DNA of 64,000 nucleotides from positions 2,761,361-2,825,360 of the forward strand of contig CM074805.1 in the NCBI GenBank assembly GCA_037447605.1. Direction: 5' to 3'. The notes beneath the pieces were generated by a model. The model did no database searches and was not told the origin of the DNA. It worked only from the letters and a program-made list of their open reading frames with translations. The translations under genes and the position numbers were made by a program. The DNA comes from Zygnema circumcarinatum SAG 698-1b (lineage: Eukaryota; Plantae; Zygnematophyceae). This document shows, piece by piece, positions 2,498 to 19,060 of this stretch (position 1 is the first letter of the stretch; the number at the start of each line of letters is the position of its first letter).

Positions 2498-4039
2498 GTG
2501 CCCGGTATTTGCGATCCACCCTAAAAACACCGTGATCTCCGAGCATGGTACTGTTGGCCAGAGGGTCTGAACCGTAGAGAGGGGGCATGGGGTGAAGGCT
2601 TCATGCAGCTGCGTGAAAACCCTTGAGCTGTATGCTCGAGGACGAGCACGGGTTTAGGGGAGGACTGTAGCGAAACGCTATACATGTGTTGTACGGCCTA
2701 GTACTTACATCCGCGGTTGCCTTTTAATGGTAAAGCACTGGTGTGGGTACCGGGAGGTCTAGTGTTCAAACCTTGCAGTTGGCAGGTTTGTTACACTGTG
2801 CTAGACCGACTTCGCTACATAGAGTGCTGCTGTTGATGAGCGGGCCGCTCAATTACCAGCCGCTGCGCGCATGGCAACACGACCGGCGAACTTGCCTCGA
2901 CTTCTTCCGGCGTTCCAGCGCTGGTTCTCCGGCAAGGCCATCAAATACGAGAAGGATCTCCACCTGGATCGTGAGCTGCGAGACAACCCACCAGCAGATG
3001 CCCAGGCATTGTTACACAGGGCAGAGCGAATTCAGAAGGATCAAGAGAGAGGCAACCGACATGTACGACCACATTACATGAACGCTACAGATCCACGACA
3101 AGATCGACTCTACCAGCAGTTCCTGAAGACACAGAATCAACAGTTGTTCGATCCCTACGCTACATCTATGTTGAATTGGTTTCCCCTGAAGTGGTTCTGA
3201 AACCACTCGTAGAGGATAAGGGGTCGTAAACCGAGCCCCCTCTCGTCGTGTCTTCTCCCGTATTCATCTCGGCCATGATGACTACCGTGAGCCAAGCAAG
3301 AACTGCGGAGACAAAGTGTAAGAGAAAAAGCCCACCGCCGAAAAACCTCTTCTTTATACAATGAAAGATACAATGTGCGTGCAAAGATTCTACTCCCACT
3401 CGCTCTATCCTTACTTACTAAGCGTTGCTTGTGCGTGCTGCCCCCGACTATTCTTCACTCTTCTCGCTCTTACTACTTCCACACGGAAGCATCGCCCTTG
3501 TGCAAGAGTAAAAGGCGGAACCTCCCCATAAAGGTTCGTGAGTGTTCCTGAATCGATCAAGATTCAGATATAAGCTTTCCCCTACGAGCGAAATTTTTAT
3601 GTAGCTGGGCGGCCGCGACCTCGTCACGTTGCCACATGCAAGGGCTGAATCGCCCCTACGTGGTCGCCACCACCATGGACGCTTCCGCGGCGCCAAGGCG
3701 CCGCCTGCGTAGTTTTCCACGGGCCAGGTAAGGTTTCACGGGAGCTTTACCTCGCAGCTGAGTGCGCTTCCGCCGCTTGCCGCCAGCGCTTTCAAAACGC
3801 TGCTTTTTCGGTGTGCGCTAAACCTTCTCGCTACTGGATCAAATCGTTTGCCAGTTCGATTGCTGGCCCGCTGACCAGGTCACGCCGGCCCGCTCATTAA
3901 TGCTTCCTCCCAGCCCTTAGTCGCTGCCGCTACAAGCCGCCGCTGCCCTGCGACGCCAACAAATGTTCGCTCCGTCACGCCACGGTCCCGCGGAACTTTA
4001 ACTTAGAACTTCAAGGCTCACGCCTCAAGGCCACCAACC

Positions 4040-6043: not shown

Positions 6044-6143
6044 NNNNNNNNNNNNNNNNNNNNNNNNNNNNNNNNNNNNNNNNNNNNNNNNNNNNNNNNN
6101 NNNNNNNNNNNNNNNNNNNNNNNNNNNNNNNNNNNNNNNNNNN

Positions 6144-6172
6144 ATACAACCCATGTATAGCGTTTCGCTACA
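6144..6172 (-). mobile_element. 5' terminus of another TRIM-family LTR, truncated by a gap
   Basis: Reverse complement TGTAGCGAAACGCTATACATGGGTTGTAT matches the TRIM LTR start TGTAGCGAAACGCTATACATGTGTTGTAC at 27/29 positions. Confidence 0.88.
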
Positions 6173-6177
6173 ACTAC

Positions 6178-6360
6178 TGTAGCGAAACGCTACAGTCACC
6201 CCAAGGGGGAAGGGTTACTTAGAGCCCGGCGTGGCTTTATGTTTCCATCCAATGCAGTACCTAACGGTTAGGGCATCGGATACCCTATAGGACGACAGAG
6301 GTCCTAGGTTCGAACCATAAGAACTGGTTCACCCGTGGGGCCGCCACATAATCTCTATGG
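6178..6360 (+). mobile_element. Second tRNA-like LTR family, copy 1 (5' end)
   Basis: Starts TGTAGCGAAACGCTACA. A-box-like TACCTAACGG at 6258-6267, B-box GGTTCGAACC at 6307-6316. Near-identical to 7477-7601. Confidence 0.8.
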
Positions 6361-6726
6361 NNNNNNNNNNGGGAATGGGGCTGCCATCAGGGATAAAAGA
6401 CTCTTGTTTCTTAGACCCCTGGACATTCTTAACTTGGTGGGCAGGCTTTTGGGAGTGCAAGATCTCTTTGTGTTTGATGTACTCCCTTCTTCCATTTCTC
6501 TTTCCCCTGCCACTGTAGTGACTCCTTCTGGGTTTATGGATGTAGTGATGAATGGTGATTGGCATGTCTTTATCCTCAATGTCATGGGCGATGATGTTCT
6601 CATGCAATGTGCCATGGATGCTTTGCATGTCATGGGAAACACCTCCCATGTCCTTGGGCTGCATGTGCTGGTTCCTCAGCACATGGCAGTTCGCACCTTT
6701 CCCAACGCCACTTGGCGGTTGGTGAA

Positions 6727-8171: not shown

Positions 8172-9045
8172 GGTGATGAAGTTGGAGGAGTACAATGTAC
8201 TCAAAGTCACTCACCGTCCCGGCCGTAGTCACGGCAATGCTGATGGCCTCAGTCGCAATCCCTCGGCTCCCCTCCTCTGCCACGATCCGGCCGTTCTTGA
8301 ACCCATCCCTCCACCCACCCCTCGCCCAGAACCACGGCATGCTTCCGGCAAGAGATTTTTTATTGCGCTCAAGCCGCATGAGTATATATTCGCGAGATGG
8401 GCTGTCGATGGCCTAAATCCACCAGCCCCAGAGAGACCACGACTTCACCAGCCACCCCATGCGGATAAAGTAGAGAACTCCTCATGGATGGCGATGGCGG
8501 CGCTCACTTACTTCCTCCCATTTCAGCGCCAGCCAGCGTCATTCCGAGACTCCTCCCTTACGCGCTTCGTCACTTGACCCTTGCGTTACCCCCCCTTTAT
8601 CCACAGAACACCGAGAACTGCATTTGCTCCGCGCTCACCGAACTTCTCTGTCGATGATGACGGACAGATTCTTTACCTCCCCTCCGGCCTTCCTGTTCCA
8701 TTCCCTAACGAGCGTATGGAAATTCTCGACGTCGCCCACGATTCCCAACCTGCAGGCTTCCACCTCGGACAGAAGAAGATGGTGGCCCTGTTGCAGGAGC
8801 GCTACTATTGGCCCGGCCTCCATGGCGCGGTGAGCCGCTACATTGAAACCTGCACCCGCTGCCAACGCGGCAAGCGCTCTTCTCCCCCCGACCGCCAACC
8901 CCTCGAGATGGGTGAGATCCCAATACGCGGCGTCGCCGAAGACTGGAACATCGACACCTTTTCTATCCCCCAACTCGGCACCCCCTCTAGCTACATTCGG
9001 GTCTTCCTAGCCGTGGACAGATACACCAAGTGGGTAGAGGTTCAC
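8172..9045 (+). pseudogene. Gypsy RNase H end plus integrase (second family), with one in-frame stop
   Basis: VMKLEEYNVLKVTHRPGRSHGNADGLSR, then HHCC zinc finger (AHDS..GFHLG..YYWPGL..CTRCQ) and core WNIDT...AVDRYTKWVE. In-frame TGA at 8575-8577. Confidence 0.9.
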
Positions 9046-9055
9046 NNNNNNNNNN

Positions 9056-9554
9056 TACGGCCGGGACGGTGGGTGACCTTAAGCACATTATACTCCTCCA
9101 ACTTCATCACCCATCGTGCAAACTTAGGTCGTAGGGTAGCCATGATGTGCAGCCAAGTGAGGGGCATGTGGTCAGTCCGGATGATAACGGGCTGGTAGGC
9201 CGTGAAGAGCTTGAACTTCTCGAGTGCCCAGAGGATAGCCGCGGCCTCTCCCTCAGTAGGGCTATACTTGGTCTCGGTTTCTGAACAGACCCTGCTTGCA
9301 AAACTGACCGGGTGTTCCCCATCTGAGAATGCTTGGCTGGCCACTGCCCCAAAGCCTGTCTGACTCCAGTCGGCGTCAATAATGGTGGGAAGGGTGGGGT
9401 CAAATTGATGCAGGCAAGGAGCCTGAAGGAGGGCACTCTTGAGCGCGTGGAAGGCCAAATCCTGCGCTCGGCTCCATTCGTATTGGACTCCGTGCTTCTC
9501 CAAGGCATGTAGGGGACGTGCGATAAGGGCATAGCCCTTGATGAACCGGCGATA
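9056..9554 (-). mobile_element. Gypsy RT-connection/RNase H fragment, same family as 8172-9045
   Basis: YRRFIKGYALIARPL...IIDADWSQTGFGAV...FASRVCSETETKYSPTEGE...RTDHMPLTWL...KFARWVMKLEEYNVLKVTHRPGR. Confidence 0.93.
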
Positions 9555-13541: not shown

Positions 13542-14399
13542 GAAGGAGTTTTTTTTACCTCTTTCAGGTAGCCTTATTAAAAGTGAACTGGATGTTGACG
13601 GGTTGGCGGTTTTCGTTTTAACAATTTCATTGTACTCTTTTATTATTTTCTTCTCACATATTTTCACTGCGCCGATCGGATTAAACTGTTTTCCTTGTTT
13701 TTATGACAGTCAACATATTTGTCTGTGAATCGATATGTAGCATACATCCTCCAGTGCCCAGACCGCCATGAGTCATGGCGAGCCATCGTCGCATGTCTGT
13801 GGACACATGATTGTCGCATCATGCATCCCATACATACCATCTCGCCGAGTCGCTGCTCCCACGGCCCCACCGGACCTGTGCCGCCGACCGTAAAACCGCA
13901 CAGGTTGAGAAATTGAGAAAAATTCTAATCCTCAATCTTATTAGGGGGAGTCAGACCTTGACCATCGCCCGCGGAATTGCAAGATTTCGACCGCGGAAAG
14001 GTATTGATTTCGATTTCCGAATTCGGTTCGGAAACCACGGCTCCCCCCGAACCTGTCTGTCACGTCGTACGGCGGAATAGGCTACAAAAATGCCCCCAAA
14101 TTTCAGAATTCCGCGCTCCGAAACGGGGGGCCTCTGGAGGCCCCCCGTTTCGAAATTCCAGCTTTCCGCCGATGAGGAATCGTGCCCCGCCTTGTCGCCA
14201 TGCGCGTCACGCACGTGCGAGCGCCTCTCTGCCGCCGCCCGGACGCCGCGACCCGCCGCCGCGCAAAGCAGCGTTTCCAGTGCTGGCGCAGGTTTAGGGT
14301 TTCGCTTCCCCCAGCACCAGCGGCTTCTTTCCGGCAACTGTGAGCACCACGGGAGAGCGGTGAGCGAAGACGTCAAGGCGAAGAGGTACTCCCTCTCTA

Positions 14400-15560
14400 T
14401 TCCCCTCTGTTGCTGTCTCCCTCGTCTCTCCCTCTCTGTTCCCCCCTTTCTCTCTCTCTTGCTATCTTCCTTTGTCACTCTCGCCCTCTTGTCTCTCCCA
14501 CTTTCTCCCTGCCTGTGCCACTCTGCCCCTGCCTCCATCGGCCTGGCCCATGCCTCCCTTGTCTCCCTTGTTGCTCTTTCTCCTGCTGCTGCGCTGCTTT
14601 TCTCGCTGCTTCGTTTTCTGCTGCACCAGCTGCTTTTAGTGCTCCTTCTTTCTCTGCTTCTGCTGCTGCTACTGCTGTTTCTTTTTCAGCTGGTTTTGGT
14701 ATTGTTGTGCTGTTGCTGCTGCTGCTGCTGCTGCTGTTACTGCTGCTGCTGTTGTTGCTGCTGCCGTCTTTTCTGCTGCTGCTGCTTTCTTTGCTGCTGC
14801 TGTTGCCACTGCTGGTGCTCCTACTTTTTTTGCTGCTTCTTGTCTGCTACTTCTGCTGCTTTTGCTTCTTTTTCTGCTACTGCTCTTTTTACTGCTTCTT
14901 TTTCTGTTGCTTTTTTGCGCTTCTTTTCCTGTTGCTGTTGCTATTGTTGTTCTGCTGCTGCTGCTGGTGCTCCTGCTTTCTTTGCTGCTTCTTGTCTGCT
15001 CCTGCTACTGCTTTTGCTTCTTTTTCTGCTACTGCTCCTTTTTACTGCTTCTTTTTCTGTTGCTTTTTTTGCTGCTTCTTTTCCTGTTGCTGTTGCTATT
15101 GTTGTTTTGCTGCTGTTGCTGCTGCTAATTTTTTTACTGCTTCTTTTTCTGTTGCTTTTAATGTTGCTTCAGTCTCTGCTGCTGCTGCTATTGTTGTTCT
15201 GTTGCTGCTAGTGCTGCTGGTGCTTTTTTTACTGCTTTTTTTTCTGATGTTTTTTTGCTGCTTCTTTTTCTGCTGTTGTTGTGTTGTTGTGTTGTTGTTG
15301 CTGCTGCTGCTATTGATATGCTGCTGGTGCTGCTGTTGTCCTTTCTGCTGCTGCTTCTGTTGCCGTTGCTTTTTTTGCTGCTGCTTGTTTTGCTACTGTT
15401 GCAGCATTCATTTTTTTTTTTGCTGCTGCATTCCTCTTCCGCATTGCCCTGTCGCTCTTGCCTTTGCCCCTTGCTGTGTTGTTCTTGCCTCTGTCTCCCT
15501 TGCCTGTCCTTGTGCTTCCCGTTCCTTATGCTTGTGTTGTGTGTATGATTGCATATAATT
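14400..15560 (+). repeat. Strand-asymmetric CTG/CTT/TTG low-complexity tract with ~130-150-bp internal repeats (mirror at 17330-18230 on the - strand)
   Basis: Composition and recurring TTTTTACTGCTTCTTTTTCTGTTGCT blocks. Confidence 0.85.
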
Positions 15561-15578
15561 CCTCCCCCTCCCCATTAA

Positions 15579-15649
15579 GTCAAAGTGGCGGATTGATTAC
15601 GCAACTGTTGTAAAACAGTAATAAAGGGGTTCAAATCCCCTCTTTGACC
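15579..15649 (+). tRNA. tRNA-like cloverleaf copy 1 (GTA variant), 6-nt anticodon loop; probable pseudo-tRNA
   Basis: Acceptor GTCAAAG/CTTTGAC, D-arm GCG..CGC, anticodon arm ACTGT-TGTAAA-ACAGT, T-arm AGGGG-TTCAAAT-CCCCT. 71 nt. Confidence 0.75.
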
Positions 15650-16835
15650 TGCACTGTTTATTCATTCTTCCATTTTTATTCATTTATAGTTTTTGTGTTT
15701 GTGCTTCATGTCTTATATTTGTTGTTATTTTTCCTAGTTCTTTTTATTGCTTTTTGCCTTTTCCTTCAAAACTTACGTTTTACGTTTTACATCATATTTT
15801 GTTTTGAGCATATATAGGTAGTTTGCTAACAAAATTATGCCGGCACACTCAGGAAAACCCGTCTTCTTTGGTTTTTGGAAACCTTGGTGGTATTAGCAAC
15901 CATTCAGGATAACCATGATCAAGTGCGGCAATGGGCTGTATTTGATGCCATCAATACAATTATAGAATCCCTTGTAACTGCGTGTGCTCAAAATCCAAAA
16001 CGTCCGGACTTAGGAGAAACAAGTTGATAAAGGTGCAATTGATTCAACAACAATACAAAAAATATCATTAGAAAAAGAATGATCGACGTGTGGGCTAAGG
16101 AGGGACAAAGTGGGCGGGGGTGGGAAGAAGAGGATCAACAAGAGAGAATGGAGAGGGTTGAGATCCACTAAAGAGGAGAGCGAGAGTGAGTCGGGAATAA
16201 GCCATAAGAGGGAGACAACAACAAGAAGATTGTAAGGAAGGGGCAAAGAACACAAGATGCTAAGATGTCACATACTAAGAGGGGGAAGGAGACACACGGG
16301 GTAGAACAGGAAGGGAAGTGACAGAAAAAAGAGAGGGCAAGATACAGCAAGGTAAGCGAACGAGAGATAAGAAGGGAGGGGACAGGAAAGGGGGGGGGGG
16401 GAAGATGGAAGAACAAGGCAGGGAAAAACAATGAATGGAGCGTGAGAGGGAGAGAGAGTGGGAGGGAGGGAGCAAGTGAGCACACGGATACAAACATGAG
16501 GAGAGATGGGCAAAAGAAAGGGTCGCAGGTGGCAAACTAGACGGACGTCTATATGAATAATCTTAACAGACAGGAAGACAGTCTGTCTGAAGACCAGCCG
16601 TTCAAATGGAGTTTCCAAACACCAAGCTGCGAAGAGAGTGAGAAACAAAAAACAAACGCACCAAGGCCAGCATACAGAGAGGAGGAAGCGGGTGAGGGAT
16701 GGGGGGAATGCACAAATAACAAAAGTGAGAATGGGAGAAAGAGGGCACAAAGAGGGGGGAGGGGCAGAGAAAAAGCAAAAGCACAAACACAAAAACTATA
16801 AATGAATAAAAATAGAAGAATGAATAAATCGTACA

Positions 16836-16906
16836 AGTCAAAGAGGGGATTTGAACCCCTTTATTACTGTTTTGCAACAGTTGCGTAACCAATCCGCCAC
16901 TTCGAC
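16836..16906 (-). tRNA. tRNA-Cys(GCA)-like cloverleaf copy 2, 6-nt anticodon loop
   Basis: GTCGAAG-TG-GCGGATTGGTTACGC-A-ACTGT-TGCAAA-ACAGT-AATAA-AGGGG-TTCAAAT-CCCCT-CTTTGAC-T. U discriminator as in tRNA-Cys. Confidence 0.8.
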
Positions 16907-17233
16907 ATAATGGGGAGGGGGAGGAATAACATTCAATCATACACAACACAAGCATAGGCAGAGGAACGGGCAGCAGAAGAAGAAGAAAAGGCAGCAGCAG
17001 CAGAAATAGCAAAAGCAGAAAAAGAAACAGCACAAAAAACTGCAACAGCATGAATAGCAGCAGAAACAGCAGCACAAAACAAAATATGGTATACAAGGTA
17101 TTCAAAGTTTTGAAAGAAACTCAGAAAACAAAAAAAAACANAACTAAGATAAATAACCACAAATATTTTACATCAAATGCACAAACACAAACACTATATA
17201 TGAATCAAAATAAACAAATGAAAAAATAGTACG

Positions 17234-17304
17234 AGTAGAAGAGGGGATTTGAACCCCTTTATTACTGTTTTGCAACAGTTGCATAACCAATTTGCCACTT
17301 CGAC
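17234..17304 (-). tRNA. tRNA-Cys(GCA)-like cloverleaf copy 3, 6-nt anticodon loop
   Basis: Same fold. D-stem is GCA/TGC and the acceptor has one mismatch. Lies 398 bp from copy 2 in tandem. Confidence 0.75.
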
Positions 17305-19060
17305 TTAATGGGGAGGGGGAGGAATAACACACAGTCATACACGCAACAAAAGCATAAGCGAAGGAACAAGAGGCACAAGTAAAGGAAGGGAAGACTGAGG
17401 CAAAGGCAACATAGCAAGGGGCAAAGGCAAAGGATGTCGGGGCAGGGGCGAGGGAGGTAAAATACGGAACGTGGAATGCGGAATGCGGAATGATGAATGA
17501 AGCAACAATACAAATAAAACAAAACCTACAGCAGCATTAGCATAAAAGCAAAAGCAAAAAAAGCAGCAGCATAAAAAGCAACAGCATCAGCAACAGCAGC
17601 AGCAACATCAACAGCAGGAGCAGGAGCTGGAGCTATAGTAGCAGTAACAGGATAAGAAGCGGCTGAAGCTGCAGCAGTAGCAACAGAAACAGCAGCAACA
17701 GCAGAAACAGCGGCAGCAACACAACAACAACAGCAAAAACAGGAGATGAAGAAGGAGGAAGCAACAAGAGCAGAAAAAGCAAGAGCAAAAAAAACAGCAG
17801 CAACATCAACAGTAGCAGCAGGATGAGAAGCGGCAGCAGCTAGAGCAGTAGCAGCAGAAACAGCAGCAACAACAGTAGCAGCGGCAGCAGCACAACACAA
17901 CAACAACAGCAGAAACAGCAGATGAAGAAGAAGATGAGGCAACAGCAGCAGCAAAAAAACCAAAAGCAAAAAAAGCGGCAGCTTAAAAAGCAGGAGCAGT
18001 AGCAAAAAGAGCACCAAGGGAGACAAGGGAGGCATGAGCAAAGGCGAGGGAGGCAGGGGCAGGTGCAAGATCATAGGTGGCAGGGGCAAGGGAAAGGAAG
18101 GGAAAGGGAGGCAGAGGGAAGGGCAGAGGAGGCAGGTGCAGAAGCAAGGGCAAGGGAGGCAGGTGCAAGGGCACGGGAGGCAGGGGCAAGGGTAAGGGAG
18201 GCAGGGGCAAGGGCAAGGACTCACTGCTGCTCAAGTCCGCCGTCGTCCCTAAAAACCGATCGCGCTTTTGCCGTGGTCGACGGCACACCGCTCACCGTTC
18301 ACCGTTCACTGGGGTGAGGCGAGAGGACGCTCTGCTCACTCCGCTGCAAGGATGGCTCGGGCGATGGCGAGGGAGGAGCCCTATACCCTAAACCCGAGCT
18401 GATCTGAGCTCGCTGAGAGCGAGCAGACGGGCAGGCGGCGGACGCGAGGCGCCGCGGCGGGACGCCGCTCGCGCGGTGGTGACGCGCGTGGCGACAAAAC
18501 GGAGGGCGGCGGGCGGCAGGCGGCGGAGGGAGCGCGGGGGGCCGAAAAGGGGGGAGTCAGACTTGGCCCGGAGATACGGAGGCAAAATAATTGATCTCTG
18601 GAATTCGTGACGCCCGAGCCTGTCGAACGTCCACTTTTCGCGGAATTGGGCTGCCGTACAACGCGGAATTAGGGCCGGGGGCTTTCTGAATTGATTTGGC
18701 GCTGGTCTAAGTCTGACTCCCCCTATTGAACAGGGTTGAACTTTGAACACGCGAGGTCGAAACTTTTTCGATTTAAGAAAGCGAAAAGTCTTAATGAAAA
18801 AGTTCAAAGACTCAATTTTGTTCGGTCGCACGTGTGGACTCCAATTTTTGCCACTTTGGTTCCGTGAGATTCGAGGGATCTGCTCAACCCAAGCGCCATT
18901 TTGCCCTACAGTATCCCCCCTAATATTTTCGCCATGGTTTCGGCAAATATTGGGCGAAAATCTTGGAATTTGCAAATATAAGGAAGTCCGTGTTAACAAT
19001 AGGCGGGCGGTATTATGTTAGAGTTCGGCCTGCGGCCGTACTGTTTCTCTCTGTAACAGG

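Follow-up and report, generated by a model that had tools for sequence, protein, structure and literature searches.

Three tRNA-like cloverleaves lie between positions 15579 and 17304 of a 64-kb stretch of DNA from the alga Zygnema circumcarinatum SAG 698-1b (contig CM074805.1, positions 2,761,361 to 2,825,360; the whole stretch is called the window below, and all coordinates are those of the window), and the question raised by this locus is whether they are working tRNA genes, tRNA-shaped sequences kept for some other use, or remains of a tRNA gene carried along by something else. The reading that we favour, with a probability of roughly 55%, is that they are copies of a pseudo-tRNA-Cys relic embedded in a repeat unit, which was amplified by an element with terminal inverted repeats together with local duplication and is passively transcribed in long or intronic RNAs. 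In kind this finding is ordinary, a tRNA-derived repeat carried by a mobile element; its noteworthy features are the uniform anticodon arm capped by a GNRA-type tetraloop and the substantial extent to which the units are represented in long RNAs.

Scanning of the whole window by ARAGORN returned exactly three tRNA-like genes, at 15579-15649 on the plus strand and at 16836-16906 and 17233-17304 on the minus strand, all with abnormal anticodon loops that the program read as the four-base "anticodons" gtaa, gcaa and gcaa in copies 1, 2 and 3, respectively. The Rfam tRNA model RF00005 matched the same three cloverleaves end to end with 47.8, 49.7 and 45.8 bits (E = 4e-7, 1.2e-7 and 1.4e-6; the gathering score is 29), with a one-base gap in the anticodon stem in each of the three alignments, and a permissive Rfam scan of the whole window gave no tRNA matches beyond these. 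The three copies are:

15579-15649, plus strand: tRNA-like copy 1, the "GTA" variant, with A in place of D-loop G18 and C at position 73 (ARAGORN, Rfam)
16836-16906, minus strand: tRNA-like copy 2, "GCA", with U73, the same as the three-copy consensus (ARAGORN, Rfam)
17234-17304, minus strand: tRNA-like copy 3, "GCA", with U73, a D-stem G-C changed to A-U and one acceptor mismatch (ARAGORN, with the start at 17233 or 17234; Rfam)

Per-column identity of the three 71-mers was 96%. The T-arm with its B-box-like GGTTCAAATCC, the anticodon arm and the variable region were called invariant across the three copies, the anticodon triplet reading GCA in two and GUA in one. The acceptor stem was fully paired (7/7) in copies 1 and 2, copy 3 had 6/7 pairs, and 98.4% of the stem cells were paired across the three copies, with a single unpaired cell. 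For copy 1 the cloverleaf was the minimum-energy fold (z = -3.9). G18-G19 and the T-loop were canonical in copies 2 and 3, and G18 was lost in copy 1. The D-stem of copy 3 carried A12-U22 in place of G12-C22 (alignment columns), both substitutions being CpG transitions, and T-runs were found 3' of every cloverleaf, T5 about 24 nt after copies 1 and 2 and T6 about 9 nt after copy 3. A previous sequence-only reading of this locus had described three 71-nt cloverleaves with a perfect T-arm, a shared loss of one base with two GCA and one GTA triplets, a paired D-stem change in copy 3 that CpG decay could mimic, and T-runs downstream; the two programs agree on the cloverleaves at the same positions, the Rfam gap locates the lost base, and the D-stem change with its caveat and the T-runs were recovered as described.

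The lost base lies in the anticodon arm, which was 16 nt long in 3/3 copies in comparison with the usual 17 nt. The same 16 nt can be drawn as 5 bp with 6 nt, as 4 bp with 8 nt (ARAGORN) or, at minimum energy, as 6 bp with a tetraloop; the "6-nt loop" of the sequence-only reading is one of these drawings and not the one of lowest energy. Folding indicated a 6-bp stem of ACUGUU/AACAGU capped by GCAA or GUAA (GNRA-type), whether the arm was folded by itself or as part of the copy 1 and copy 3 cloverleaves. Reciprocally, when one U was put back into the U-run, the arm became ACUGU-UUGCAAA-ACAGU, a canonical tRNA-Cys arm with U33, GCA and A37-A38. Position 73 was U in copies 2 and 3 and C in copy 1; U73 is the discriminator base of tRNA-Cys and an identity element for cysteinyl-tRNA synthetase (CysRS). 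The likeness to tRNA-Cys that had been noticed before was thus strengthened by the restored U-U-G-C-A-A-A loop and by U73 in two of the copies, and the simplest history on these grounds would be that of a tRNA-Cys-type gene that lost one U before its amplification. These comparisons support the view that the three cloverleaves are genuinely tRNA-derived and of the tRNA-Cys type, and descent from a tRNA-Cys gene is probable.

Measured against a functional tRNA-Cys, the modules possess the cloverleaf with a 7-bp acceptor stem, D-arm, T-arm and conserved T-loop, and lack the 5-bp anticodon stem with a 7-nt loop that holds GCA at positions 34-36. On the folded model, the three modules cannot decode in the ordinary way, because in an arm that is shortened and closed into a tetraloop the anticodon is not presentable. 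The proposal that they form a frameshift-prone decoder was rejected on arm length and fold: in +1 frameshift-suppressor tRNAs of the sufD type a base has been gained and the arm is lengthened to 18 nt, with a 5-bp stem and an 8-nt loop, whereas the modules, although ARAGORN likewise draws a four-base "anticodon" in an 8-nt loop, are one base short at 16 nt and fold stably as a tetraloop hairpin.

Self-comparison of the three copies indicated that the conserved sequence extends past the cloverleaf, by 60-120 nt upstream and 60-155 nt downstream, a point that the sequence-only reading had not made, and the cloverleaf is thus an internal part of a longer repeat unit. The units are distributed over the two arms of a 4.8-kb mirror element that is described below:

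15458-15806, plus strand: repeat unit with copy 1, from about 120 nt upstream to about 155 nt downstream of the cloverleaf (80% identical by BLAST to the unit of copy 3, over 361 nt)
16779-16956, minus strand: core repeat unit with copy 2, 92% identical to the copy 1 unit in the opposite arm (repeat search, BLAST)
17075-17430, minus strand: repeat unit with copy 3, the mirror counterpart of the copy 1 unit (BLAST, alignment)

Pairwise identity of the units was 92% over 180 nt between copies 1 and 2, 88% over 176 nt between copies 2 and 3, and 80% over 329-361 nt between copies 1 and 3, and in the three-way alignment, which gave a conserved core of about 190 nt, the 23 nt directly 5' of the cloverleaf were invariant. 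The copy 2 unit (16779-16956) was nearer to that of copy 1 in the opposite arm (15527-15706; 92%) than to that of its tandem neighbour, copy 3 (88%). The arms overall are 74-80% alike, and the closeness of copies 1 and 2 may accordingly go back to gene conversion between the arms or to an inverted duplication at a later time.

The structure of the unit rules out a tRNA-derived short interspersed nuclear element (SINE), because conserved sequence precedes the cloverleaf in all copies, where the tRNA head of a SINE would stand at the 5' end of the element, and because the unit has no tail: instead of an A-rich, simple-repeat or long interspersed nuclear element (LINE)-like tail with flanking duplications, the units end in T-rich or CTG-type arm sequence. 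Plant tRNA-derived SINEs are known as the TS, Au and p-SINE types. The modules resemble such elements in their tRNA-derived part, intact A and B boxes, non-functional anticodon region and many dispersed copies, but differ in the internal position of the cloverleaf, in the missing A-rich or LINE-like tail, and in their carrier, which here is a DNA-type element with terminal inverted repeats, with local tandem or inverted duplication adding copies.

The sequence-only reading had held that the tRNA was retained for a function. In the conserved core, 8 of 70 cloverleaf columns (11%) and 21 of 113 columns of the unit flanks (19%) were variable (Fisher p = 0.22), pairwise tests of cloverleaf against flank conservation gave p = 0.11-0.38, and two stem pairs were changed on both sides, a covariation score that was equalled or exceeded in 94 of 500 shuffles; with three copies only, both the relative-rate and the covariation tests are underpowered. 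The cloverleaf was therefore not significantly better conserved than its flanks, its covariation was within the range of the shuffles, and the idea of retention was not borne out; selection on the cloverleaf would seem to be absent.

The mirror element that carries the units spans 13942-18725. The same 15-mer, TAGGGGGAGTCAGAC, stands inverted at both of its ends (0.13 matches expected by chance), the terminal alignment covers 28 nt at 89%, and the mirror homology ends exactly at these terminal repeats. In addition, AATTCCGCG has four occurrences in the window, all at most 170 nt from the element ends, with 0.46 expected in the whole window. Both the terminal inverted repeats and the subterminal repeated motifs of a DNA transposon are hence present. 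The ends and the two long tracts of the arms are:

13942-13969, plus strand: left terminal inverted repeat (TA + GGGGGAGTCAGAC...), exact 15-mer, 28 nt at 89%
18698-18725, minus strand: right terminal inverted repeat, exact 15-mer, 28-nt alignment
14400-15457, plus strand: left arm, pyrimidine-rich CTG-type low complexity, intron-like (AT skew -0.56; repeat families D2, D5 and D7)
17431-18219, minus strand: right arm, mirrored low-complexity tract (AT skew +0.59 on the plus strand; 74% to the left arm)

The arms are collinear at their termini, at 14519-14804 with 18065-17793 (74%) and at 15458-15806 with 17430-17075 (80%). Going inward, each arm consists of a GC-rich promoter-like stretch, GTGAG-type donor motifs, about 1 kb of pyrimidine-rich CTG-type tract and then the tRNA-like unit, of which the left arm has one and the right arm two, 398 nt apart. 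All cloverleaves face inward, along the pyrimidine-rich strand and in the exon 1 to intron direction of their own arm. Inverted repeats I1 and I2, of 172-180 nt and 85-92% complementary, join the arms along with many weaker pairs. Comparison of the flanks showed TA alone to be common to both sides, and a duplication of 3, 8 or 9 bp was absent. Taken from its sequence, the mirror is probably a non-autonomous DNA element with terminal inverted repeats that was capable of movement.

Foldback, "double-end" and composite non-autonomous DNA transposons include the FB elements, double-Ds and MITE-flanked composites (a MITE being a miniature inverted-repeat transposable element). The mirror element is like these in its long, internally repetitive inverted arms, short terminal repeats, subterminal motifs and lack of a transposase, and unlike them in that its arms contain promoter-, exon- and intron-like parts as well as tRNA-like modules and that its flanks share TA only. 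Cassandra, a family of terminal-repeat retrotransposons in miniature (TRIM), reportedly carries a 5S rRNA module; both are non-autonomous mobile elements in which a module resembling a Pol III gene has a fixed internal place, but Cassandra is a long terminal repeat (LTR) retroelement with the 5S sequence in its LTRs, whereas here the element has terminal inverted repeats and the tRNA-like module lies in intron-like arms.

The exon-like parts of the arms were recognized from read-run contigs that mapped to the stretch 15400-17500 with an identity of at least 85%, which came from the DNA run X1 and the runs X16, X25 and X29:

18226-18240, minus strand: end of the exon-1-like segment, 15-mer GCGGACTTGAGCAGC, unique in the window, followed by A + GTGAGT (5' splice-site motif)
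15818-15937, plus strand: exon-2-like segment of 120 nt, with AG before it (15816-15817), GT after it and an ATG at 15837, frameshifted locally

A contig junction common to X16, X25 and X29 joins GCGGACTTGAGCAGC to the start of 15818-15937; the three runs are RNA libraries in practice, and the spliced exon 1-exon 2 junction is present in all of them. They also have identical loose ends on both sides of the exon-2-like segment and an extra A behind 15861, and X25 and X29 each have RNA contigs about 1.3 kb long whose alignment is confined to 15832-15937. The junction-bearing contigs represent a paralogue of the window locus, with 87% identity over 106 nt. In this expressed paralogue the two exons are collinear, whereas at the window locus they stand on opposite strands; the locus is therefore most easily understood as a head-to-head joining of two 5' halves. 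By this alignment, the pyrimidine-rich arm and the tRNA-like units would correspond to intron 1 of the paralogue's transcription unit. The frame from ATG 15837 stops after 19 codons, and the extra A behind 15861 keeps it open in the paralogue.

In the DNA run, 350 small contigs mapped to the stretch, and the stretch is therefore multi-copy over its whole length. Depth was about 258 for contigs nearly identical to the window, and the summed depth was about 1,100 on unit 1, 5,700 on unit 2 and 2,600-3,250 on unit 3; summed contig depth is not a copy number and the estimates are rough, and as such they suggest that the whole element is present several times and the tRNA-like unit in roughly 10-20 copies.

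In the three RNA runs, contigs of 130-783 nt carried the tRNA-like units together with 130-200 nt of upstream flank, and the 783-nt contig (depth 223) held two tRNA-like units in tandem. Because the units are joined to their flanks in the contigs, the RNA seen is a long RNA with modules in it and not a discrete product of RNA polymerase III (Pol III); such contigs are uninformative on strand, RNA ends and small RNAs. RNA depth was zero at 16252-16464 and 17033-17174 despite DNA depth there, and in X16 it was 330-510 on the units versus 544 on the spliced exon. The sequence-only reading had named missing transcripts, together with stems decaying at the neutral rate, as a result that would speak against it; the modules are present in RNA, within contigs of up to 783 nt.

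The favoured reading arranges these observations as follows. A single tRNA-Cys(GCA)-type gene would have lost one U from the U-run at positions 31-33 prior to amplification, a loss that would have turned its anticodon arm into a 6-bp hairpin with a GNRA tetraloop and left the gene dead. The relic would have persisted as an internal part of a 180-350-nt repeat unit, placed once or twice in each pyrimidine-rich, intron-like arm, and at the window locus two 5' halves of the element would have been joined head to head to form the 4.8-kb mirror. Its copies may have become more numerous as the element transposed and through tandem or inverted duplications on the spot, and the units would be co-transcribed, probably in the sense direction, inside longer RNAs. 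Any present activity would be a by-product other than decoding, either of the intact acceptor/T-arm minihelix, where RNase P or RNase Z would cut the host RNA, or of the intact A and B boxes, through TFIIIC/Pol III binding.

Several observations weigh against this reading. The conservation trend favours the cloverleaf (11% of its columns vary, and 19% of those in the flanks), of five stem pairs with changes four are still paired, and the GNRA form is kept in both loop variants; given only three copies, this trend is compatible with a modest real constraint on the cloverleaf. The units and the spliced exon have RNA depths of similar magnitude, a high level if the units were nothing but intron or transposon noise. 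No source tRNA was found in the prokaryotic genomes, metagenomes, IMG/VR and phages that were searched. Finally, mobility of the element is only inferred, because the target-site duplication is limited to the 2-bp TA, and no transposase partner was found (Pfam searches of the neighbouring open reading frames, ORFs, gave a retroelement integrase only).

One alternative, which we regard as unlikely, takes the modules as selected processing signals in long Pol II transcripts in the manner of MALAT1/mascRNA, with putative RNase P/Z cuts at the cloverleaf borders; the outcome would be that a small non-decoding tRNA-like RNA is freed or that the ends of host RNAs or introns are defined, and the transposon would merely be the spreader. 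The acceptor stem and T-arm, which make up the minimal RNase P/Z substrate, are the best-kept parts of the modules, and copies 2 and 3 also keep a canonical T-loop and G18-G19, but G18 is lost in copy 1, copy 3 has its acceptor mismatch, and neither the excess conservation nor the covariation is significant. The modules are also sense-oriented within a spliced transcription unit, and abundant long RNA contigs hold them, one with a tandem pair. In X16 the depth is 470-510 upstream of copy 3 and over the copy itself, and just downstream it falls to 61 and then to 0, which speaks for this view; against it, contig depth is a flat average per contig, and contig ends reflect repeat branching, not RNA ends.

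The mascRNA and MEN-beta structures of MALAT1 and NEAT1 are reportedly tRNA-like. The modules share with them a cloverleaf with a degenerate, non-decoding anticodon arm and the embedding in a longer transcript, a Pol II transcript in MALAT1/NEAT1 and here the contigs with unit and flanks from libraries that contain the spliced junction. Those structures are single and deeply conserved and their RNase P/Z cleavage has been demonstrated, whereas the modules are young, repeated, transposon-borne and known from sequence and RNA contigs. Plant dicistronic tRNA-mRNA transcripts and tRNA-like mobility motifs, as described in PMC8166872, likewise involve tRNA-shaped sequences that are co-transcribed with Pol II RNAs; the cases described there are genuine tRNA genes beside mRNAs, whereas here pseudo-tRNAs stand in intron-like repeat arms. 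A bolder form of the processing idea, which we hold to be quite improbable, is that a transposon family has spread GNRA-capped tRNA-like modules that are kept for putative RNase P/Z excision from long or intronic RNAs of high abundance; they would then serve either as a mobile cassette for processing or stabilising, similar to mascRNA, or as the source of a new class of small tRNA-like RNAs.

A further alternative concerns the origin of the sequence and would be compatible with the pseudo-tRNA relic favoured above: their ancestor may have been a tRNA-Cys of mitochondria or plastids, or one gained by horizontal transfer, that reached the nucleus and was later trapped in the element, which we likewise consider unlikely. 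The acceptor and anticodon stems are A/U-rich, and the restored loop, UUGCAAA with A37, agrees in form with that of the tRNA-Cys of bacteria and phages that were found. A search with the U-restored anticodon arm and a generic T-loop yielded 77 environmental bacterial or phage tRNA-Cys genes, the best of them agreeing at 58 of 71 positions, a figure that is inflated because 26 positions were set by the search pattern and that is not evidence of descent. The 3' half of the cloverleaf had no exact match, and the combination of D-arm and T-arm no exact-pattern match, in 185,579 bacterial and archaeal species genomes; a 26-mer from the variable loop and T-arm was absent from the Joint Genome Institute (JGI) metagenomes and from IMG/VR, and BLAST against phages gave nothing significant (best E = 0.04 over half the length). 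The idea of a captured foreign tRNA, as put forward from the sequence before, thus met with no source in any of these collections. Nor was an organelle-scale depth spike confined to the 71-nt cloverleaf seen in the DNA run.

Still less probable is that the modules are live Pol III units, with transcripts of about 100 nt ending at the T-runs, or TFIIIC-bound chromatin boundary sites resembling extra TFIIIC (ETC) loci, whether or not the element gains from this. Every copy has an intact A-box-like TGGCGGATTGG and an intact B-box GGTTCAAATCC, and T5/T6 runs follow 9-28 nt downstream. A TATA-like ATATAA stands about 25 nt upstream of copy 1, but such a motif is absent upstream of copies 2 and 3, and the 130-200 nt of upstream flank joined to the cloverleaf in the RNA contigs imply that the RNA seen starts elsewhere; Pol III products of about 100 nt are neither shown nor excluded by RNA-seq contigs.

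A similarly small chance is left to the view that the inverted repeat itself is the relevant feature and the tRNA shape incidental, a read-through hairpin RNA (172 nt, 92% complementary, with a loop of about 1.07 kb) being diced into small interfering RNAs (siRNAs) against the family: repeats I1 and I2 and the weaker arm pairs would permit such a hairpin, both arms are represented in the RNA runs, and the family is multi-copy with several between-copy differences that are CpG transitions, as expected of methylated repeats, but a section of the loop (16252-16464) has no RNA depth at all, and none of the contigs reaches from one arm into the other.

For annotation, these results mean that tRNA detectors accept loci which should be flagged as pseudo-tRNA repeats and not as tRNA-Cys or tRNA-Tyr genes, and that the 4.8-kb mirror should be annotated as a composite mobile element and not as a gene cluster. 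If RNase P/Z cutting or TFIIIC binding were true, the family would show in nature how a transposon can scatter a cassette for RNA processing or for chromatin boundaries over a plant genome, and the spliced host transcripts offer a direct handle on the cassette idea. In the literature searched, no description of this family was found; a paper on Marchantia mentions tRNA-like sequences only to state that they had been filtered out.

Other candidates and frames around the modules were followed as well. Kinship with the "tRNA-like" modules of a TRIM element (2353-2795) and of a gypsy LTR (about 6144-6350) was rejected, the sequences being unrelated; ARAGORN did not call them, and at E <= 1 the Rfam tRNA model did not match them either. 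For the frame 15863-16024, downstream of the one that starts at ATG 15837, a word-index homologue search gave no candidate and Pfam no family, and two repeat-protein matches from an exhaustive search were judged on pairwise inspection to be low-complexity chance. The ORFs that cross the cloverleaf, used as a route to paralogous units, led to none.

Two further features were located in the outer parts of the mirror element:

18549-18723, minus strand: MITE-like piece of about 175 bp at the right end of the element, with the GGGGGAGTCAGAC terminal repeat at both of its own ends and a third, inward-facing terminal-repeat match at 18548-18562
14291-14302, plus strand: telomere-repeat-like motif (GGTTTAGGGTTT; TTTAGGG type) in the GC-rich promoter-like subterminal region, read from the sequence

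At the left end of the mirror, only a degenerate inner counterpart of the MITE-like piece was seen, near 14037-14053. The telomere-repeat-like motif has a mirror partner at 18386-18395 on the minus strand, and both lie 5' of the exon-1-like segment. The left subterminal region also contains a near-perfect GC-rich palindrome (CGAAACGGGGGGCCTC / GAGGCCCCCCGTTTCG) at 14124-14157, with no counterpart seen in the right arm. A single N occurs at 17142 in the right arm and N runs at 6050-6143 and 6362-6371; the assembly is thus gapped, and the repeat structure near these places may be incomplete. Upstream of the mirror element by about 5 kb, the ORF at 8581-9198 encodes the zinc-binding integrase domains Integrase_H2C2 and zf-H2C2 (Pfam), the remains of an LTR retroelement.

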